From NCBI GenBank assembly GCA_977017575.1, contig CDRNVI010000153.1:64329-128328 (forward strand): a DNA stretch of 64,000 nucleotides, written 5' to 3'. The notes below the pieces were generated by a model, which saw nothing but the letters and a program-made list of their open reading frames with translations, searched no databases and had not been told where the DNA came from. Every line of letters starts with the position of its first letter. Position 1 is the first letter of the stretch. The position numbers and the translations under genes were made by a program. The DNA is from Paramoeba atlantica (lineage: Eukaryota; Protista; Discosea). Shown in pieces: positions 181 to 61,900 of the stretch.

Positions 181-2700
181 ACCTCTTTCTTTGCTGATTC
201 CAGCTGCGTGAGCTAGTTGGTCTGCTCTCCCATTGTATTTTCTTTTTATGTGTTGGTGTGTAATGGTATTGAAATCTTGGTCTAACTGTTCTGAAAGGAT
301 ATGGATTTGCAAGATTGGGCTAGGTCAGTTTTTATCTTTGAGTCTCCAAGGATATGGAGGTCTTTTATGCCTGGGGATATGGCGAGTCTTTTGAGTTCAT
401 ATTCTCCCCAAAACTCTCCAGTATTGCTTGTTCCCAGGGCTGTTGTAAGTGCTTTCGCTGCTATTTCTTCATGATTTTTGTATATGACACAGCCTGCCCC
501 ACCTTTAAGGTTCGGGATGTCACCTGTGTCATCATAGTATCCCGTGAATTCCGTTCTCCTTTCGAAGACCGGTTTTTCTTCTTCTTTCTCACTGTCTTCT
601 TTTGTTTCTTTGGGATTACTTGTGTTCTTTTTTTGTGGGGTTCTTTTTGATGTGTTGAGAATTCTCCTCTCAGCTTCCTTAAATTTTATGAGGTTTTTAG
701 TGAAATGGAAGTCAGTTAGTTTTGGTAGATTGGCCTTTTCATCAAAACCTATGTCTGTAATTAAGTTTCTTATCGTCATGAGGATTGTCAGGTTGAAAGT
801 TGCTTGAGATAGGGACACTTTTCTTTCCACTAGGAGTAGATCGTTTATACTTCTCGGCCACTTGATATTCTGGTAAATTTTTGTCTTGGGTTTTAGAAAG
901 TCTATCTTTTTCTTCATTTTTTTATAACATTCCAAAATATGTGGACAGTTGAGGAAATGGTGATAGGTTTCTCTTTCTTGGCACCCAAACCGGCATTTGT
1001 CATTGAGGTCTTTGATAAAATTTGCTGTCCTGCTTTTGTGGTTCCATGCTTTGGCAATGTAAGGATGTAATTGTGTTTAAAGGGGACTGGGAGTTTGTGT
1101 GATAGATTGTGGAGCATATTTGTTTCTGCATGGGGGCTTTTATCGTATGTGAAGCCCACTGGGTTGTGAGCAGGGAATCGGGCTCTAAGTTGAGAATATA
1201 TCCAATTTGTGGGTCTTTTGATATTTTCCTTCCATTCGTTGTATTTTTCCCTGTTTGTGAAATGTTCATCACAGTTTGTTTGATAGTTTTTTCTAAGGCC
1301 CATTATTCGGTAGTACATGTTTATGGCCCATCTTCTTTTCCATTCTACTGTGTTTTCACTCAGGTTGAATGTTTGGTGGTTTGTTTTACATGGTGGTCTT
1401 TTTGCAACTAGACATGCTATGTTGAATAACAGAGGGTGGATAATGGGGGTTTTAAAACTTAGTGGCGGAACATTGGAGTACAGCATGGTGTTTGGGATAT
1501 TGTTCTTACCACCAAGACCCACTCTTATTGTTCTTGACATTTCCCCCATAAGATTTTGAGGGATAATGGAGAAGCGTCCCAGGTATGGGATGTGTGATAT
1601 TACGTATGTATTTATGTGGTTTATTCGTTGTTGGACAGTTGAGTTGGCTTTTTTCGTTTCGTTTTGTACAAAAGAAGCTGCCTCCTTTTGCTTGTCTAAC
1701 CGGTGTTTCCAATTTGTTTGGCCAAAGTTTTTGGTTTCTATTTTAACCCCCAGGTATGTTGTTATTTTTGTTTTCTTTGCTTCGTCCCATGGATGGGGAA
1801 GTGGTTCATTAATTTGGCTATCAAACATGAGGAGAAGGATTTTATCATAATTTAATTTGCTGCCCATTGCTTCATTGTAGTTTTTAAAAACTGAGGTGAT
1901 TTTCTCGAGTTGTGTGAAGTTTTGAAGGATAACAGCAATGTCGTCCATATATGCTCTTGCAAAATGATTTGGTTCGTCTGGTAACTTAGACACCAGAAGG
2001 TCAAAGATTAGTATGTAGAGTATAGGAGATAGCGGGCATCCTTGTTTGACACCAGTTACTGCTATAAACTCAACACGTTTTGCTCCATTAATGTGGATTG
2101 TGGTTTTACTGGGTGCGAGTGCTAAGTTTGCTATGTTTCTGAGGTGTTTTGGGCAGTTAATTTTTTCCAACATTAGTTTGATCATATCTCTGTTAATGAA
2201 GTCGTATGCTTTCATGTAATCGGTTTGGAGAATCATGGGCTTGTTACCCAAATCTCGTTCTTGTTGGTAAGCATTTAAGATGTCATCAAGGCAGTCATCT
2301 ATAAATCTGTTGTGTAAGAGGGCTCTTTGAGCTGGAGACACTATTTCAGAGAGGGTATCTCTGAATTCGTGTGTCCAGTATTTCATTAGAAGTCTGTATG
2401 AAGCATTGGTTATTGATATTGGTCTTGTTCTATCAGGTGTAACCGGTCCATCCTCTTTAGGAAGTAGGACTAATCTGGCTTCGTTGAAATTTGGGCCTGG
2501 GTCGAAATTGTCTTGGGTTGATGCTTTTATCAGGTCTGGCCAGAAGCTTGGGAATTTTTTGTGCATAGCACGATAATATGCAAAAGGGATGCCATTTGGT
2601 CCTGAGCCTGTTCTATTTGTTTTAGAGACTGTTTTGGTTATGATTTCTGGGTCAGGAGCGAAATCTTTTTCTTTTTCGATTTTGGGATAATCTTGAAGGA
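181..2700 (-). mobile_element. 5'-truncated, frameshifted non-LTR (LINE-type) retrotransposon: RT, CCHC zinc knuckle, RNase H
   Basis: ORF 914..2773 has LINE RT motifs (GPNGIP, RPISITNASYRLL, QTDYMKAYDFI, GVKQGCPLSPILY, YMDD, YLGV). A frameshift near 1060 leads to CRFGCQERETYHHFLNC in frame with ORF 282..935, which contains RNase H motifs (KGGAGCVIY, TSNTGEFWG, ILGDSK). A second frameshift gives HIKRKYNGRADQLA at ~200-250. No endonuclease or ORF1 upstream. Confidence 0.9.
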
Positions 2701-2709
2701 TTTTTTTTT

Positions 2710-5700
2710 CTACTCTTCTAACTCTTTCAATCTCAGAAAATGGGCAGGAACTCCCCCCCAAATTGAATGACATCCAATCTGTTCTCTTGGCAATGGAAAT
2801 CCACCAGGAAGAAGCTCACTGCAGTGCCCCATCAGATTTTCTCGAGTGATAAATGCAACTTGATGTAAAATGACATGATCTTCAATCTCAGCAGGCCCAA
2901 ACTCCATTCCTTCTAATTCAAAAGAGTGACCAAAAATGACAGAATAATGAGATACAATACAGTGAGAACCAACACGAATCATATCTGGGTCACCAAGATA
3001 AAGGGAATCAATGAAGCTTGCTGTTCCAATCTTCACTCCAAGACATCTCAAATAGAGGGTATAAAGAGGACTTCCAAGTGTGAGAGCTAGAAATCCAACA
3101 TTGTTAAGTGATTTCAGTTGCCATGCTTTGAGGTATGGTTCAAGTCGTGTCACTTTCTCGGAGACTACATCGTATCTGCGGATCAAGATCCACTTTCCAA
3201 CAATTGAAAGCAAAACCTTCAAAGCTTGAAAGGTCATGTACCACATCAAGAGAGAAAAGTAAGAGAGAGTGCGGTTTTGATACTCCAACCAAAGATATCG
3301 AACCAACTCATATCCTGGCCACATAAAACTTGCTAGAATAATGAGGAGGATCACAATTCCTCCAATTTGTTTTATGAAGCGAGCAACTTGAGGAATACAT
3401 CCATGAAGAGAAGTGAATTGGGTGCTTGGTGCTTTTGGATAAATTTTTGCAGGAATTCCAACACACATTGAATCATTGGGAACTTCCATTCCATCTTCAA
3501 TCAAACATCTCCCTGCGATCTTACAATTCTCACCAATAACAACACCACCCCTGATTTCACAATCAGCTCCAATCCAAGTACCCCTTCCAATTCGAATCTC
3601 CTGGAAGACTGTAAATCCACTTGGTGCTTCTTTTGATGCTGCTACTGTTAACACTGTTGAACCACCAATGAAAATATCATCTTCCAAAACAACAAGATCA
3701 ACAAGTTCAGGGGTAAGACGGAAATTCGTCATCAAAACAGAGTTTTTGATCTCCATTCCCATGAGCTTTGCGAGCCAAATAATCAAATGAGTTTGTTGGA
3801 AATAAATTAAAAAGTGAGAACTCACAAAATCAAAGTGTCGATCAACAATGAACTTTCGCCACATGAACCACCCAGTTGATGGGTAAAGCACTCCTGGTTG
3901 AATCCCTCCAGGAAGAAAGATTCGCTTCACACAAATTACCATGATTATTTTCCCAAGAGCTAAGATGAGCAATGAAATGAGAATAAAAACAAGGCCTGTG
4001 TAACGACCAGCATCAAAGTCACCTGATTCAACCACTTGAACAAATGGCATAACAGCCAAACCAGGGATAACTGATATCACAACAACAACCACAATGCCTA
4101 TAAGTTTTGCCAGATGCCAAAGTAAAGAGTTCCCAGTTTCATTGGGTAAAACATCATCTTTCTGCTGCTCATTGTCACCCCCTTCACTCTCAACATCTGT
4201 CTCAGTTGGTTCATAATACTCAAATGGCATGCGAGCTTCTCCTGGTTTCATTGTACCAGGAGCAGTGATGATACCATTTGGAGGGAGTGTAGAATTTCGC
4301 CCAATTTGAATCTGATCAAATCTCATGACTCCTGTGCTTTCAAATGAATAAGCGGTCACATGTGCACCACCATCCAAATTGGACCCACCCCCAACCTCGA
4401 TCAAATCAAATTCAGTCATCCAAACAGGCATAGACGAAGGCAAACCAGAAGGCATTCGGACTCCCATTGCTCGGAGCCAGAAAAAGTGCAGAAGAGTTTG
4501 TTTGAAAATCATCAACACCAGCTCCCCATAATACCAAAAGAGCGTTTTGACCATCCACCAACGAAGGAAATAAAAACTCCACAGTTGTGCCTTCCTTGGT
4601 TTCATTTGCCCAATGATCAACCATTTTGATATTGTGGTTAAGATAACCAAACATAACATCCCGATTAACAATGCAACAGGAAAACCAATAAAGAGCAAAC
4701 CATATCGACTGAACTTAGGATCAAAGAAAAACAGATATTCATACTCAAAATCACCATAGAGCCACTCGAGGTACAGAAATGCAGGCCATAAACAAACAGC
4801 TCCAAATCCTGGGATAAAGATCAAAGAAAAGAGAGCTTGCATCATTCCAACAATCAGATATTGCCAATATGGAACTGTTCCCTCTCTACCACAAATTTCT
4901 CTTTCAGGACAATGTTCAGAACTTCCCATTCCAAACTCACATGCAGCAGCAGTCTTGGGAGTTTTCTTTGAAAAAAAAAGAAGGTTTAATCCAAAGAAGA
5001 CGACCAGAGAGTTTTTTTGTTAAAAAAAAAAAGAAAAAAAGAAAAACCTGTGGTGCTCCAAATTCAATGACAATCTCTGTGTCAGTCTTTCCATTGGAAA
5101 CTTCATCGAAGAGAACATCAACAGCATTTCCAATTGTCCAATTTGGCCGAACACTATCCGAAGTTTCGCTCAGGAAATCCTTCTTCGTCAATTTCGTTGC
5201 AGTCAGTATCTCTCGAATTTTATCAGGAGAGAAATCAAGAAAGTGTGGCAAATCACGAATCTGGGTGTCTTCTTCTTCCAAAAGGGTTGAAATTGGTAAC
5301 TCATTTCGCATTGTGAGGTGGTAGAGAAAGACAAAATGAAGGACCTTGCGTTTTTGTTCAACAGAGAGTTTGCCATTGGGACCGAAAACAGTATTGGGAG
5401 CAAAGTAGTTCTTCTTCCCACCTCCCTGTTGATCGAAATATTGTTCGAGAAGATGAAATGTCAAGAGGTTAATTTGACCATAGTCATAAAGCATCATTGG
5501 ATCAATTGTTAAAGAAGGAAACGCCTGAGAAAGGAAATGGCGGAGTTCAACTTGTTCAATAGAAGTCAACCCAAGTTCGAGAAAGGAAGATTCAGACTGA
5601 ACAGTGTGGGTGGCATCAGAGCAAATAATTTGAGCAGTCATCAAACGAAGAAACACATTCATCACATTCTGGCAGCACTCTAAACCCATTTTATCGTCAC

Positions 5701-8654
5701 CGAGAGATACACCCCCACAACAGTGAAGAATTGGAACAAGAATTGCAGGATCAGACAAGATTGGATTCATTCGGTCATTTCGATAATGTTTCTCATGCAA
5801 TACCTGAAAAAGACCATTGAGATAATTCTCTTTGGTTTGCTTTCTCCTAATTTTCCCACTTGTCGTTTTCAAGATTGTTCGAGCAGGAAGAAGAACGACA
5901 ATACTGCACTTAATTTCATGTCCACGCCTTACTGCATTTGCGATATCGTCACATATAGCTTCGTAATCCATGTTTTTGATTTGATGAGATCGCACTTCGA
6001 TAACACAACAAATGAGTTCTTTGTCTTCCTCATCGACCATTGCAAAGACAGCACAACATCCAGGACGAATGGCTGAATTACTTTGGTCAACTGTGGCTTC
6101 TAAATCATTTGGGTAAAAATTCTTTCCACCAATAATGAGAATATCTTTTTTGCGACCACAAAGATAAACTTGCCCTTCATAGAGGAATCCAATGTCACCA
6201 GTTCGCAACCATCCACCACCCAAATCACTTCCATGATGAAGACCATCCTCTTTAATCACACCATGAAAGGTTTCTTCAGTTAAATCAGGTCGACCGTAAT
6301 ATCCGTGAGCCACTCTGCGCCCTCGAACCCAAATCTCTCCAGAAGAATACATATTTTGTAACTCACATGTCTCTTTATCAACAATCGCAACTTCACAATC
6401 AACAGGCCAACCACATCCCACCACAGAGAGGGTTGTCTCCCCCTCCTCTCCATCCTCCTCTTCTTCTTTCCCCTCACTCTTCTCACTCACAATCATCATC
6501 TGACCACTTCCAGGTTCATCTTCTTCCTCCTTGCTGGAGTTCTTTTCAACAATTTTGACTCCGTCGTGTTCTAACTGTTCTTTCACTAAAACCTTCACTC
6601 TATTTTGTCGATAAGCTCGCTCATCAATCTTAAGTTCATTAACCACCTCATCTGGGAGATGAGTGGTGATGATCAAAGTACTCTCTGCCATTCCATACAC
6701 TGGACAATGCGCAATTGGACGGAAAGATGAAAATCGTTCATTCCAAGAACAGAGAGTGTCTAATCTCACTGGTTCAGAACCATTCAAAGCACACCGCATA
6801 CTAGACAAATCTAAGGTATCGGCAACTTCTTGAGAGGTTTTCTTGGCACACAACTCATATCCAAAGTTGGGACCTGTGGTAACACAAGCTTTGTATTTGC
6901 TGATCATCTGCGCAAAGAGAGTAGGATTGGAGAGAAAGGTAGCAGGGCTGGCCCCAATTGTCGCTCTACCCATCAAGAGAGGATAAAAAATTGCCCCGAT
7001 CAATCCTGTGGAAATTAAAGAGTTTTTAAAGGTTTGTTGGTAAAAAAAAAACGCAGCTTCTTCTTAAGTTATGAATAAAACTTACCCATATCATGATACT
7101 GCGGAATCCAAAATATCTAGAATTAAAGGGAGGAGATAAGTTCATGGTCATCTAAAAACGAAAGGGAAAAAAGGGAAAAAAGAAGACTGTTGGTTTCTAA
7201 AGAGGGAAAATAAAAAAGAAGATGTAAAAATGACTCCATACCATTATGTCACAATTCCCTGGAGACACTGAAACATTGTAGAGAACGTTGGCATGTGAAA
7301 CCATCACTCCTTTTGGATCACCTGTACTTCCTGTGGAGGAACAATAAAATTATTATTATAAATTTGATGTGGTATGATGATTGGCACCTCTAATTTTTTT
7401 CGACCACCAAAAAATCCTTTCTTCTCTTTTGCATAAACTCTTTTTACATTCCTCCATATCCAATCTAATTATCAAATCCCCTTCAAATAAGAAAGAATCA
7501 ATTGCGAAACCTGAAGTATATTGGAGGAATGCAAGATCATCTGATGCAATCGGATCATTGAGGAATGAATCACCATCGCTTGAGAATTCGACATCTTTGA
7601 GTTTGAGGGATTTGTCCACGCTCATCCAGGGGAGTTCAGGCCAAGATTGACTTTTTTTTTTCTTTGGTGACTCTTGAATTTGGTCTGCCTCACCGACTGT
7701 GATATCTCCCAACTCTTCTTTTCCAATCCCATTCCCGAAAGAATTGAATGAGAACTTTCCAGAGAATCTTCCTCCAAACGATGCTGATGATCTGGATGAA
7801 ATCAGTCCCGAATCACCCAACGAGTGTTTTGACTTTGAGAATGACTTGTTTGAGAAACTCCCACTCCCTATGTCGTCGTTTTTGTCTTTGAGACTTTTGA
7901 AGGAGAATCGGTTCGAGTCTTTCATAGATTGTCCCAATGACCTTTTTGACCCTGACCTGGGAGAATGTCTCCCACCCTCGCAAAAACTGGGCTCCTTCGA
8001 CAACCAGGTTGGTGTTGCGATCTTGATGAGTGTGTTTTTTTTCTGTTGCAATTTTGTGAACGGCATAACTTTCTCTCTGTACGCTCGGTGGGTGAGAATG
8101 AGCCGACAATTTGCATTTTCAAGAGCGGTTGAAAATCTTGGAACAGAAATATCAGGCTTTGAGGGGTCTGGAGGATACACTGGGACTGCAACAATCCCTG
8201 AGAGAAAAATTGAACAACAATGAAAAATAAACTGGATGGATTAAAAGGATTGGAAAAAAAAAAAACCTGTCAGTAAACATGCCAGCATTGCAGGAATAAA
8301 ATCAATCCCAGGAAGGAAACACAACGCAACTTTGTCCCCTGCATTCAAATGAAATTTGGAGAACATTCGTTTTGCGATGTGTTGTGCGCTGTTCAACAAC
8401 TGACGATAGCTCCTTCTTGACACTTCTTCACATGATTTATCGACCCATATTATCGCAGGACTGTCTGGCGCTTTTTTCGTTCTTCTAGTGAATGCTTCTC
8501 GAAAATTCTTACATTCCAGGAGTTCTTCGTGATTTAATCCCACCGGCCCAAAATGTGTATCGTAAAAGTCTTGTTGTTCAGACGATGGCGAAGGACGATT
8601 TTCTCTTGCCCTCATCATAATTTCGTGACTTCCTTTGATGTACGCCATCTTCAT
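2710..8654 (-). CDS. FAAL-type adenylation domain + acyl carrier domain + Pls/PosA-like C-terminal module (3x TM pair/hexapeptide beta-helix); 6 exons, ~1802 aa
   Basis: Exons 8654-8267, 8197-7511, 7330-7242, 7116-7086, 7005-5048 and 4965-2710 all join at GT-AG, total 5409 nt, in frame. Motifs: LQYTSGSTGDPKGVMVSHAN, WIPQYHDMGLIG, GPNFGY, YGMAE, GEIWVRG, LRTGDIGF, GRKKD, TTSGKIRR; carrier motif ELGLTS. Three hydrophobic plus LRAMGVRM/LMGMEIK/LRCLGVKIG units, each followed by hexapeptide repeats (IGRGTWIGADCEIRGGVVIGENC). Confidence 0.88.
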
Positions 8655-9629
8655 CAAATCCGCCCAACAGCAGGAGAAAAAGACGAGTTCTTTTCCAAAA
8701 CCAAACTTTCAAATAACAGCCCACCTGTTTGGAAACAAAGGTTGGCCGCCCGGGGAGCTCTCTGGCCAAAACAGAGGGTCCAATTTGACGAAAACAATAA
8801 TGGTGACACCAAATTCTTCGAAATTTATCCTTTAAATGGAGACCCATTTAAAGAAGGGTCTCTCCAACACTTCAAATAGTGTCGACAATGTTGCGAAACG
8901 GAAAACCATTTCTCGTTTTCCGGGAAAGAAAAAAAAAGACATCGAAATTCTATTTCGAACAACTTTTGACTCAAAAAAAATTCGGAACAAAGGGGCCCAA
9001 TTTTGAAAAGCCAAAAAAGATTTTTCCAAGAATTTTCTTTTCGACAAAGACAAAGAAAGAAAAATATCAAAAAGAAAAAAGAAGGGAAACAAAGAAGAAA
9101 AAGAAGAAAAAGAAGAAAAAGAAACCTTCCGCTCGTCTGAAAAGATTTTCTCTTGTCTTTTTTTTCCCTTTCTTTTTCCCTTTTCTCTTTCCTTTTCTTT
9201 TTCCTTTTCCTTTTCCTTCTCCTTCTCATTTTCCTTTTCTTTTTCCTTCTCTTTATCTTTCATTCTCCCCATCACCATCCTTCTCTTTCTCCTTCTCCCT
9301 CTCACCAGCCCCCTTATCAAACAAAGAAGTCACAAAAATAGGATTTTTTTTCTCTTACACTTTTACCCGCTTTTTAACCTTTATCCCCAAGAAAAATGGA
9401 GGAGGGATTGATATTTTTTTGGCAGAGACATTGACATTCCTTTCCTTTTTTCCATTCAAATAAAATGAAACAAAGCAAAAAAAAGTCTTTTGGCAGACAA
9501 AAATAGGTTCAAAAAATCAAGAGCTCTAAAATTAGAACGCTTTCTTTCAATTCTTTTTCTCTCTTTCATTCTCTCCCTCATTCAATTTGCCCTTGAAACT
9601 TTGCAAAAAAGAAAAAGAAGAAAAAGAAA

Positions 9630-22398: not shown

Positions 22399-22820
22399 CT
22401 TAACAATTTTAGATTTTCTAGCTCTCACACTTGAAAGTCCTCTTTATACCCCACCTGAGATATCTTCGAGTGAAGATTGGAACAGCAAGCTTCATTGATT
22501 GCCCAAGAGCTAAGGTGAGCAATGAAATGAGAATAAAAACGAAGCCTGTGGAACGACCACCACATCAAAGACACCACTTCAACAAATGGCATAACAACCA
22601 AACCAGGGATAACTGATATCACAACAATAACCACAATGCCGACAAGTTTTGCCAGATGCCAAAGTAAAGAATGACCACTTTCGTTGGATAAATCATCATT
22701 GTACCAGGAGCAGTGTGATGATACCATTTGGCGGGAGTGTGGAATTTCGACCAATTTGAATCTGATCAAATCTCATGACCCCTGTGCTTTCAAATGAATA
22801 GGCAGTCACATGTGCACCAC
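22399..22820. pseudogene. Rearranged relic of the FAAL-Pls-like gene 3' module
   Basis: 22399-22503 matches the reverse complement of ~3003-3115. 22502-22820 matches ~3952-4370 in direct orientation with internal deletions and frameshifts. Confidence 0.88.
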
Positions 22821-58900: not shown

Positions 58901-61900
58901 CAAAAAAAACAAAACAAAAAATAAAAAAATAAAGATAATAAAAATAATAAAAAAAACAGGGAGATCCAAATCTACCAGAAGAGGTACACGAATTACTAGG
59001 GAGGGCAAACATACTTTTGGATTTCGCTGTTGCAAGAGAAAAACAATATACTTTGACTCTTACTACTCCTCTCGGTGTTACTGGTGAAATTGATGTTCTC
59101 TCTTTTCCTTTTTTTCTTTTTTTTTTTGTTTTTTTTTTTGTTTTTTTCTTTTCTTTCTTTTTTGTTTTTCTTTTTGTTTTCTTCTTTTGTTTTCTATCTT
59201 TTTTCTTTACTCTCCAAATTTTAGTTCCTCTTTATGAAGTTATCTTTTACTCCTTCTTGAACTAAACTATTGTTCAGGTTTTTCTTATTTTCAGTCAACT
59301 TGACCAAGATGCACTGACAAAATATGAAGAAGATTATATTCCCTATGACCCATTTGATTCAATTCGTAAAATTAAACGAGTTTCTTTCTCTTCTTCTTTT
59401 CTTTTCTTTCTTTTCTTTCTTCTCTTTCTCTCTTTTCTCTCTCTTAAAAATTTCTTCTCATAGGTTGCAGGACACAAAAAGATTGGAATAGCAAGGAGGG
59501 TTTTAGGTGGAGAACCAGCCTTTCCTATTATGATTGTTCCTGGTCTGGCTTCTTCTGCTCTTGAAGCTTTTGCAACTGATGATAAGGTTTTTCATTTTCA
59601 GCCAGAAAGAAGAAAAGAAAAGAAAGAGAAAAAAAAAATTAAATTTATTTTTGGATTTATTTTTATCTTTTTCATTCTTTAGGAATGGTTTCGAGAGAGA
59701 GTTTGGATCGATCCTTTCAAAATTGGGCGATTGGCTGTGATGGAAAAGGTACTTCTTGATTCATTTCTTATCATATTTTGTAATCAGGCGAAATAGTTAA
59801 GTGGTAAAATTCTCGCTTTGGGTGCGAGAGGCCCGGGTTCGATTCCCGGTTTCGCCCATTTTTTTCTTCTTTTTTTCTTTTTTTTTTCTTTTTTTCTTTT
59901 TCTTTTGGTTTCTCATCTTGGACAATAGATTAACAAGAAATTTCAACGAAAGAAAAAGAAAGTTGAAACTGATCTCCAAAAGGAAGTAAGAATATTTTTC
60001 TTTCATTCAACTCCAATTTTCAACCAGAGAAATTTGTTCTGATTCTTCAATGAAACAGGAACTCGACGATGAAGAAGAAGTAAAATGGGGGAAAATGCTT
60101 GGCCAATCAGATCGAGCGGAAAAGAAAAGAAAATGGATTGCTCATATGATTCTTCAAGAAGATGGTATCAGCGATCCTCCTGGTATTAAGGTTTGTTTTC
60201 ACAGTCTCTGTTCCATCTCTTCTCCTTTTTTTCTCTTTAATCTTTTAAAAAATATAGGTGAGACCGGTTCAAGGATTGCATGGAATTGATTTTCTTGCTG
60301 AATCGAGTGTTGCCAAAGCTCAGGTTAGAAATGAAAAGAAGAAAGAGAAAAAGGAAAAATAAAGATAACATGAGAGGGAAAAGAGAAGGGAGACTAAAAG
60401 TAACAAAACAGTCTTACGTTTTTTCGCACGTAATTCGATCTTTGATTGATTTTGGTAATTTTTTCCTTTTGTCTTTTCTCTTCTCTCCTCTTGTTTTCTG
60501 ACAAAAAAATTCAAGGATATGATTATTCGATGCTGGATGCTTGCCCTTATGATTGGCGACTTCCTCCTTCTTATCTTCAGGTTTCTTTCATAATTTTATT
60601 CTTCTTTGTTCTTTCTTTTCTCTTTCTCTTCTCTTTCTCTTCTCTTTCTCTTTTCCCCTATTTAACAAAAAGACAGAAAAGAGATAATTTTTTTCGGGTG
60701 GTAAAGAAAAAAATTGAGGCAATGGTCGAACAATTTGATCAAAAAGTTGTTCTTCTTGCTCACAGTATGGGAAATAGGTTCTTTCTTTCTTTTCGCTCTT
60801 TTGTTTTATTCTCGTTTTTTTCTTCTTCCTTTCATTTTTCACTTCACCTCTCTTTTCTTTCTCTTTTTAAAACCAAAAACACAATAGAGTAACACAATAT
60901 TTTTTAAAATGGGTGGAACTGGACGATAAAGAATGGGCAGAAAAATATGTTCAGGCTTTTCTTGCATTGGGAGCCCCTTTTTTGGGTTCTGCAAAGGCTT
61001 TAAGAACTGTTATTTGTGGTGATTCTATGGGTCTTGAGGTTCGATTCTCTTTTTATTCTCTTTTTATTCTCTTTTTATTCTCTTTTTATTTGTATTTTTA
61101 TTCCCATTTTTATTTGTATTTTTATCCATTTGAGTTCTTTTCTTTTCATTGTCTTTTTTTTGTCCTTTTTCTTAAGTTTGAATGAACAGGTATTTTTAAC
61201 AGAAGAAGAGGCTTTGTACATGGCAACAAGAAGTGCTTCTCTTCCTTTTTTGTTTCCTGTCCATGAATCTGCTTATCCTGATGATATTATCCGTGTTACT
61301 TCAAAATCTTCATTTTCAGAAGTTTGTTGTTTTATAGTTGTTTTATTGTGTTTTTAATTTGTTGTTAGTTGTTAAAAAGTTAAGTTTGTTTTTGTTAAGT
61401 TGTTTTTTTTGTTTTTTTTTCATCTTTCTAAAAATTTTAACAAAATTTTGAACAGCTTCCTTTTGTTTCTGAGAAATTTGAAACTGTTCTTTCAACTTAC
61501 GTTCCTCGATCTCTTCAGTTTCTCTCTTTCTTTCTCTTTTAACTTTCAAAGACAACTAAAATTTCTCCTTTCTTTTCTCTCTCCTTTCTAGTTTTTATCA
61601 AGAGTTTTATTGTAAAGATCCATTATATTTATTTCAAGATAAAGAAACAACAGTAGGAAGTATACTCCCACCAGTGTTAGACCCTCCTCCTTGTCAAAAT
61701 ATTTGGGTGATCAATGGAATTAATAGGTTTGGTCTCAAAAAGAGAGAAAAGAGGAAAAAGAGGTAGATGAGAAAAGTGAGAAAAGAAAGAAAAAAGAGCT
61801 TTAAAATAAGTTTGAAAGAACAATTCAAAGAAGGCAAGAAATTGAATCTTTCCAATAGGGACACAGAGGTTGGATATTATATGAAAAATAATAAACCAAT

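Follow-up and report, generated by a model that had tools for sequence, protein, structure and literature searches.

Pls of Streptomyces albulus and PosA of Acinetobacter baumannii (family TIGR02353) carry on a single polypeptide a domain for adenylation, a carrier domain and, C-terminally, a membrane domain of ~700-750 residues, with three pairs of transmembrane (TM) helices and three beta-helix units (PMC10522769). In Pls the carrier-bound lysine is passed to a freely diffusible acceptor, so that the growing chain is never enzyme-bound (PMC9205021). The PosA terminal domain has been modelled as six bent helices with three five-turn beta-helices above them, and PosA-type homologues found in Amoebozoa, Metazoa and Alveolata have all been discussed as amino-acid polymer synthetases (PMC10522769). 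Here we analyse a gene of the amoeba Paramoeba atlantica with a related layout, which lies on the minus strand (8654..2710) of a 64,000-nt stretch of contig CDRNVI010000153.1, hereafter the window, and whose adenylation domain resembles fatty acyl-AMP ligases (FAALs).

The layout is not new to the literature, since terminal domains of this type were noted in 2012 on plant 'putative acyl-protein synthetases' and on fatty acid synthase I-like (FAS-I-like) proteins of Coccomyxa (PMC3446292). Eukaryotic FAALs that have unusual partners appear in two FAAL surveys, where no function is given for them (PMC8460268; PMC12820801), and searches of the literature on TIGR02353 and on ACOS18 returned nothing relevant. 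We favour, with moderate confidence, the view that the locus is a spliced nuclear gene of the amoeba that encodes a 1,802-residue membrane enzyme, in which the FAAL domain loads the carrier and the Pls-fold domain transfers the acyl group to an acceptor that is not tethered to the enzyme.

Gene structure and transcript evidence

Four large minus-strand open reading frames (ORFs), at 8657-8241, 8180-7356, 7003-4937 and 4929-2710, each hold a piece of one protein. Read from the DNA, they belong to a gene of six exons and five GT..AG introns, with the start ATG at 8654 and the stop codon at 2712-2710. The summed exons amount to 5,409 nt (1,802 codons) and stay in frame, each exon being open in its own phase, and the introns (69, 180, 125, 80 and 82 nt, from first to fifth) have a GC content of 0.24-0.33, compared with ~0.40 for the exons.

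Exon 1 (8267..8654, 388 nt) contains the ATG, which is the first in its ORF, a leader of ~50 residues and the start of the AMP-binding domain (PF00501 positions 1-71, E 5.4e-8). Intron 1 (8198..8266, GC 0.26) separates it from exon 2 (7511..8197, 687 nt), which encodes a 'VPVYPP' FAAL-like motif, a Ser/Lys-rich insert and the first half of motif A3 (ending ..LQYTS); the second half (G-STGDPKGV..) follows after intron 2 (7331..7510), in exon 3 (7242..7330, 89 nt). Exon 4 (7086..7116), between intron 3 (7117..7241) and intron 4 (7006..7085), is a 31-nt micro-exon encoding ..WIPQYHDM. The remaining FAAL domain, the carrier domain and then a linker of ~140 residues are encoded by exon 5 (5048..7005, 1,958 nt), and exon 6 (2710..4965, 2,256 nt including the stop) encodes the 751-residue Pls/PosA-fold membrane domain. 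Introns 1-4 interrupt the adenylation domain, and intron 5 (4966..5047), which is T-rich (GC 0.24) and in phase 0, joins ORF 4937..7003 to ORF 2710..4929 in frame.

Four public sequencing runs were compared with positions 2700-8690 of the window. Run X2 comes from the same study as the assembly, the kind of library not being on record. Its contig 4 (2,453 nt), which covers exon 1 at 8266-8663, has joints at 8196>8266, 7329>7510, 7116>7242 and 7004>7085, skipping 69, 180, 125 and 80 nt; these correspond to introns 1-4 (CT..AC on the plus strand) and include both joints that flank the micro-exon. Contig 2 (2,670 nt) goes straight from 4967 to 5050 with no extra letters, intron 5 being removed and the 2-nt offset corresponding to a shared AG. 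Contigs 1, 2 and 4 together tile 2700-8663 with exactly the five introns gone, and the read depth in bins that contain introns equals that expected from the exon letters alone: 10.3 for 4900-5099, 4.76 for 6900-7099 and 2.98 for 7100-7299. Because the introns are removed and the depth fits the exons alone, run X2 behaves as complementary DNA (cDNA), and the message is spliced as modelled.

A preliminary description of this DNA had proposed that an intron at 5047-4966 fuses what the ORF track displays as two genes, and had named beforehand a lack of splicing at 5048/4965 as one result that would speak against it. The junction is borne out by the spliced 2,670-nt contig and the intron is real, but the intron content was understated, the total being five with four more in the adenylation domain. 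Since the spliced contigs, lacking exactly five introns, together cover the coding region in full, what the ORF track displays as two genes is a single expressed gene of 5,409 nt.

The locus could instead represent two genes, a pseudogene or bacterial contamination, given that automatic gene callers produce two proteins (678 and 739 aa), that a retroelement adjoins the 3' end and that a scrambled copy of part of exon 6 is found at 22.4-22.8 kb. We give this reading hardly any credence, since an open frame runs through all six exons, the run contigs lack five spliceosomal introns, the C-terminus reaches the family end in the alignment, and the invariant residues are all kept.

Three further observations concern the runs. 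In run X5, the sole run guessed to be RNA, nothing of 2700-8690 was found. A minor X2 contig extends over part of intron 2 (7360-7500) and continues with 255 unrelated letters beyond 7360; an unspliced, alternative or chimeric form could account for it. Several X3 contigs have loose ends within 2700-8690 that break off at GATC, a pattern expected from a proximity-ligation (Hi-C-type) library, which suggests that X3 is of this kind rather than RNA.

Domains of the encoded protein

Family searches were run exon by exon, a setting in which curated whole-protein cut-offs cannot apply to the single exon. PF00501 matches exon 1 with its beginning and exon 5 with its later part, and exon 5 also matches PF23024, the DIP2-like C-terminal subdomain, at 6145-5801. 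The best NCBIfam models for exon 5 are FAAL models, with PRK05850 at 1.1e-69 and FadD32, FadD21 and FadD28 at 1e-56 to 1e-51; the amino-acid adenylation model TIGR01733 is far weaker (9e-16). The closest structures in the PDB are likewise all FAALs (7r7e-g, 3kxw, FadD23 and FadD32). The core motifs of the ANL superfamily are present, with A3 split over exons 2 and 3, and with A5, A7, A8 and the A10 lysine (5854-5852) in exon 5 aligning to the FAAL structures. Judged from its sequence, the adenylation domain is of the FAAL type and not of the amino-acid type.

Two low-complexity inserts interrupt this domain. The first, in exon 2 (~8012-7665), is Ser/Lys-rich; when compared with the relative P0003 (L002, described below), its flanks are 52% and 44% identical and its middle is not conserved. 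P0003 has an insert at the same place, unrelated in sequence. The second insert, in exon 5 (~6658-6434), is acidic and lies at the place of the FAAL-specific insertion, to which it may correspond, between A5 and the next conserved block, where exon-5 residues ~116-190 (~75 residues) stand against residues 336-365 (~30 residues) of the 7r7f chain.

The carrier domain (PF00550) lies at 5602-5462, corresponding to exon-5 residues 468-514, and passes its cut-off marginally (21.5 bits against 20.8). The serine of its 'GLTS' motif, to which phosphopantetheine would be attached (5563-5561, Ser880 of the protein), is invariant in 8/8 FAAL-linked relatives and is the sole invariant column of the carrier alignment. 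The linker of ~170 residues from the carrier to the first TM helix (5461-5048 and 4965-4870) gave no family match; it is partly conserved in P0003 and absent from the other relatives.

Exon 6 matches TIGR02353, the Pls/PosA family, in four stretches (E 1.6e-48), together with Hexapep and small left-handed beta-helix (LbH) acetyltransferases in the PDB. Hydropathy reveals six TM segments grouped as three pairs, with a basic stretch and then a beta-helix unit after each pair, and the same layout is found in an AlphaFold2 model of the C-terminal domain, built with 97 aligned domains (pLDDT 86.2, pTM 0.90). In the order of the protein, the hydropathy and the model place TM hairpin 1 at 4615..4869 (exon-6 residues 33-70 and 86-117), soluble unit 1, with helices and a left-handed beta-helix, at 4216..4608, hairpin 2 at 3916..4125 (residues 281-313 and 323-350) and hairpin 3 at 3181..3390 (residues 526-562 and 565-595). 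Soluble unit 2 (3421..3903) gives the best hexapeptide match (PF00132, residues 457-489, E 5.6e-10) and the matches to LbH acetyltransferases in the PDB, and soluble unit 3 (2713..3168) bears a family-invariant histidine. This histidine (2928-2926; exon-6 residue 680, protein residue 1731) is found in 97/97 aligned domains. The amoeba domain retains the residue of every column that is invariant or nearly so in the 97-sequence alignment, those invariant across the family being K114, W115, G119, R135, W137, G168, D187, G403, G643, H680 and E683.

Compared with the ESM Atlas, the model superimposes with TM-scores of 0.81-0.85 over ~700 residues on bacterial clusters named Pls/PosA and on one fungal cluster. 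A Foldseek search of the PDB returned small LbH acetyltransferases only, with no solved Pls-type domain, and no cryo-EM structure of such a domain was found in the literature. An ESM Atlas cluster from streptophytes, annotated Catalase and Hexapep, superimposes partially on the model (TM-score 0.49) and may correspond to the plant architecture described as 'FAAL between HemY and catalase' (PMC8460268).

The terminal domain probably works like that of Pls and is nevertheless not a member of the Pls/PosA family, because it falls below the cut-off of the hidden Markov model (HMM) and is not accompanied by an amino-acid adenylation domain. Classical members score 464-658 bits with TIGR02353 and carry TIGR01733 at 1e-120 or better. 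An ordinary synthetase of cationic homopoly-amino acids, orthologous to Pls/PosA, would have precedents, as such homologues have been reported in some Amoebozoa (PMC10522769) and an amino-acid-type one is present in Phalansterium (P0006). This is nonetheless very improbable, given the strength of the FAAL match (1e-69) relative to the amino-acid match (9e-16), the TIGR02353 score under the cut-off, and the position of the domain on a branch apart from the classical clade (see below).

The FAAL-type domain, the carrier and the three TM/hexapeptide units claimed in the preliminary description all lie in one spliced reading frame, on the strand and at the positions where it had placed them, and the HMM search that it proposed (FAAL, PP-binding and TIGR02353) gave matches to all three, with Hexapep in addition. 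The likeness it saw to the adenylation-carrier-membrane layout of Pls/PosA agrees with the fold and with the family-wide invariant residues.

Relatives and predicted reaction

The protein search with exon 6 was exhaustive, as a word-index search was too insensitive and recovered the query itself and one 23%-identical protein. It returned 1,348 proteins at E<=1e-3 and five at E<=1e-30, among which, besides the query's own product, two are close kin. P0003 (44% identical) is encoded on a 6.4-kb metagenome contig with a GC content of 0.54, and its FAAL N-terminus is found in a separate upstream ORF; therefore, P0003 also has an intron. P0004 (60% identical) is a fragment of 325 residues from NCBI assembly GCA_024449705.1. 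Neither has a protein name or a known function, so these close relatives bring no defined role of the kind that had been anticipated as a possible refutation.

The other matches to exon 6 are at most 29% identical, and the majority are classical Pls/PosA proteins with TIGR01733 and TIGR02353 above cut-off. A phmmer comparison of exon 5 with the 150 best exon-6 matches identified 14 proteins with a FAAL-type domain, none of them named as bacterial. FAAL-linked proteins come from the choanoflagellate Salpingoeca kvevrii, the pelagophytes Aureoumbra lagunensis and Chrysophaeum taylorii, the liverwort Marchantia polymorpha, the jakobid Stygiella incarcerata and from metagenomes; the Marchantia member is MpACOS18, with an added amine oxidase domain. 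The five contigs of FAAL-linked relatives that were examined all look eukaryotic, and the metagenomic ones have eukaryote-like neighbours (RGS, MORN, RhoGAP and RRM proteins) as well as gene calls that are fragmented. The preliminary description had suggested a possible bacterial origin; the FAAL-linked relatives that could be placed all look eukaryotic.

A tree of 101 terminal domains (LG+G4) places every FAAL-linked row within a single set of 16 rows (SH-aLRT 95). In a tree of 43 rows with a site-heterogeneous model (LG+C20 PMSF), 13 rows stay together with a support of 90, and two very long rows float. A clustering of the label equally tight was obtained in 0/500 shuffles. The 16-row set also includes the terminal domains of three large proteins similar to type I polyketide synthases (PKSs), P0027, P0098 and P0149, one of which is from Stygiella and the others from metagenomes. 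These proteins (P0149 on L004:8001-16763) have 2,920-4,380 residues and consist of full type I PKS modules, KS-AT-DH-ER-KR-ACP in P0027, ending in a Pls-fold membrane domain. Because FAAL-linked and PKS-linked terminal domains share one branch, this branch probably receives lipidic acyl-S-carrier donors. The amoeba protein belongs to an uncharacterised and patchily distributed eukaryotic branch, already glimpsed in plants and green algae.

From these data, which establish the gene structure, the expression, the identities of the domains, the fold and the conserved residues, we infer the class of substrate, the independence from coenzyme A (CoA), the single acyl transfer and the acceptor in the following scheme. 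The FAAL-type domain would adenylate a fatty or other lipidic carboxylic acid with ATP, giving an acyl-AMP, and the acyl group would be loaded as a thioester on the phosphopantetheine of the protein's own carrier (Ser880) instead of being made into acyl-CoA. The carrier would then present this thioester to the C-terminal Pls/PosA-fold domain, in which the three TM hairpins may hold the three beta-helix units, packed as a pseudo-trimer, on the cytosolic (positive-inside) face, because every hairpin leads back to the side that carries the basic stretches. There, His1731 probably activates the amine or hydroxyl group of an acceptor that is not enzyme-bound; the acyl chain would move on to this acceptor, and the resulting lipid would be released into the membrane or across it.

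Three other accounts of the chemistry remain, namely, in decreasing order of probability, a polymerase of bifunctional fatty acids, a release or export device, and the classical poly-amino-acid synthetase considered above. In the first, the FAAL would activate an omega-amino or omega-hydroxy fatty acid and the Pls-fold domain would join the monomers iteratively to a polyamide or polyester, which would be secreted. The amoeba domain does share its fold and invariant residues with a family whose only characterised members polymerise iteratively (PMC9205021), but there is no sequence sign of a bifunctional substrate, the terminal domain is only 17-29% identical to the classical Pls type, and a single off-loading step agrees better with the PKS-terminated relatives of this branch, so that we regard this account as unlikely. 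A single transfer appears more likely than polymerisation, because those relatives use the same domain branch as an off-loading step.

The second account has water as the acceptor, or release coupled to translocation, so that a free fatty acid is moved or released across the membrane. It would agree with the Coccomyxa FAS-I-like proteins, which have this terminal domain at the position of the thioesterase (PMC3446292), and the six bent TM helices could provide a passage across the membrane. This is less likely still, since hydrolysis by a protein that has only a FAAL and a carrier would be a futile cycle consuming ATP, the family is known for aminolysis, and LbH enzymes act as transferases.

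Several points weigh against the proposed FAAL-carrier-transferase enzyme. Run X2 is not recorded as an RNA run, and its contigs overlap by just 27 and 4 nt, so that the whole coding region is tiled and not spanned by one molecule. The TIGR02353 score of exon 6 (165.6 bits) is far under the curated 423.1. The insert in exon 5 is ~55 residues longer than in solved FAALs, and because it is overlong as well as acidic and of low complexity, the rejection of CoA is not assured. The invariant histidine occurs in one of the three beta-helix units only, and its catalytic role is presumed. The corresponding positions in units 1 and 2 hold other residues, which suggests a single active centre within the pseudo-trimer. 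In addition, we found no paper characterising any FAAL-linked member of the branch.

To our knowledge, all enzymes with this membrane domain that have been characterised produce antimicrobial poly-amino acids. A FAAL or polyketide module feeding the domain, in the amoeba as in its liverwort, algal, choanoflagellate and jakobid relatives, implies a different product. It is possible, if doubtful, that the FAAL-linked Pls-fold branch, patchily present from amoebae to liverworts, makes an undescribed class of lipids. Its product could be a small molecule or head group that is N- or O-acylated, being assembled and set free at the membrane, or else functionalised fatty acids joined to an oligomer. 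If so, eukaryotes would have a CoA-independent route to lipids that has so far gone unrecognised. The amoeba protein, with its minimal form, transcript evidence and confident model, is a clean candidate for finding the product of the family, and MpACOS18 of Marchantia offers a genetically tractable parallel.

Surrounding window and comparison with known systems

An ORF of 619 aa at 914-2773 runs on the gene's own strand, shares with the gene its final 64 nt and encodes a reverse transcriptase domain (PF00078, E 1.7e-24); it is probably a retroelement of the non-LTR (long terminal repeat) type inserted just downstream of the gene. We rejected it as part of the gene, given that the C-terminus of the protein aligns to the family end and that an X2 contig ends ~45 nt past the stop codon. 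Further away, 22399-22820 holds a scrambled, degenerate copy of parts of exon 6, in which the pieces 3949-4157 (85% identity) and 4248-4370 (94%) keep their orientation and 3003-3108 (89%) is inverted. This rearrangement is present in a 1,333-nt X2 contig that has a depth of 230, compared with 8-18 for the parent gene, so the rearranged fragment seems to be transcribed more strongly than its parent, perhaps within another message. A tRNA gene (59787-59857, plus strand) is the sole Rfam match in the window.

The amoeba protein shares with Pls and PosA the single-polypeptide layout and a C-terminal domain of equivalent size, with the same three TM pairs and beta-helix units, a TM-score of 0.81-0.85 and the invariant residues (PMC10522769). 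It differs in having a FAAL-type adenylation domain instead of an amino-acid-type one, a terminal domain that is 17-29% identical, scores 165.6 bits against the 423.1-bit cut-off and stands on a separate branch with other lipid-linked eukaryotic versions, and an additional linker (~170 residues) that leads from the carrier to the first TM helix.

The bacterial FAALs (FadD32, FadD28, FadD23, the Legionella protein 3kxw and the PKS-loading 7r7e-g) are its best matches and have in common with it the core motifs; the amoeba protein also has extra sequence at the site of their insertion, to which it may correspond. In contrast to these, the amoeba FAAL is joined in cis with a carrier and a membrane transferase, contains large low-complexity inserts (exons 2 and 5) and is split by four introns. 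DIP2/CPS1 of fungi and animals also have a eukaryotic FAAL-like domain, and the C-terminal subdomain of the amoeba FAAL matches PF23024 (PMC8460268). DIP2, however, has two FAAL-like domains and neither a carrier nor a membrane transferase, and the amoeba protein is much closer to bacterial-type FAALs than to DIP2.

LpxA and LpxD are LbH enzymes that use acyl carrier protein (ACP)-bound acyl donors and a histidine as general base. With these and with small LbH O- and N-acetyltransferases, which are matched by fold, the terminal domain has in common left-handed beta-helix units packed three-fold, and it would also share the acyl thioester donor and the histidine as general base. These LbH enzymes are soluble homotrimers with three active sites, whereas the amoeba protein has three unequal units in one membrane-tied chain, with the invariant histidine in one of them.

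A like composition is found in the eukaryotic FAAL- and PKS-linked relatives, in which a module that activates or builds lipids is likewise combined with a carrier and a Pls-fold terminal domain of the same branch (PMC3446292). Their terminal domains are 17-21% identical to that of the amoeba; the Marchantia protein has an additional N-terminal amine oxidase domain, and the Stygiella protein and some of the metagenomic ones have full PKS modules. Compared with these, the amoeba protein represents the minimal FAAL-carrier-terminal domain form, with inserts specific to its lineage.

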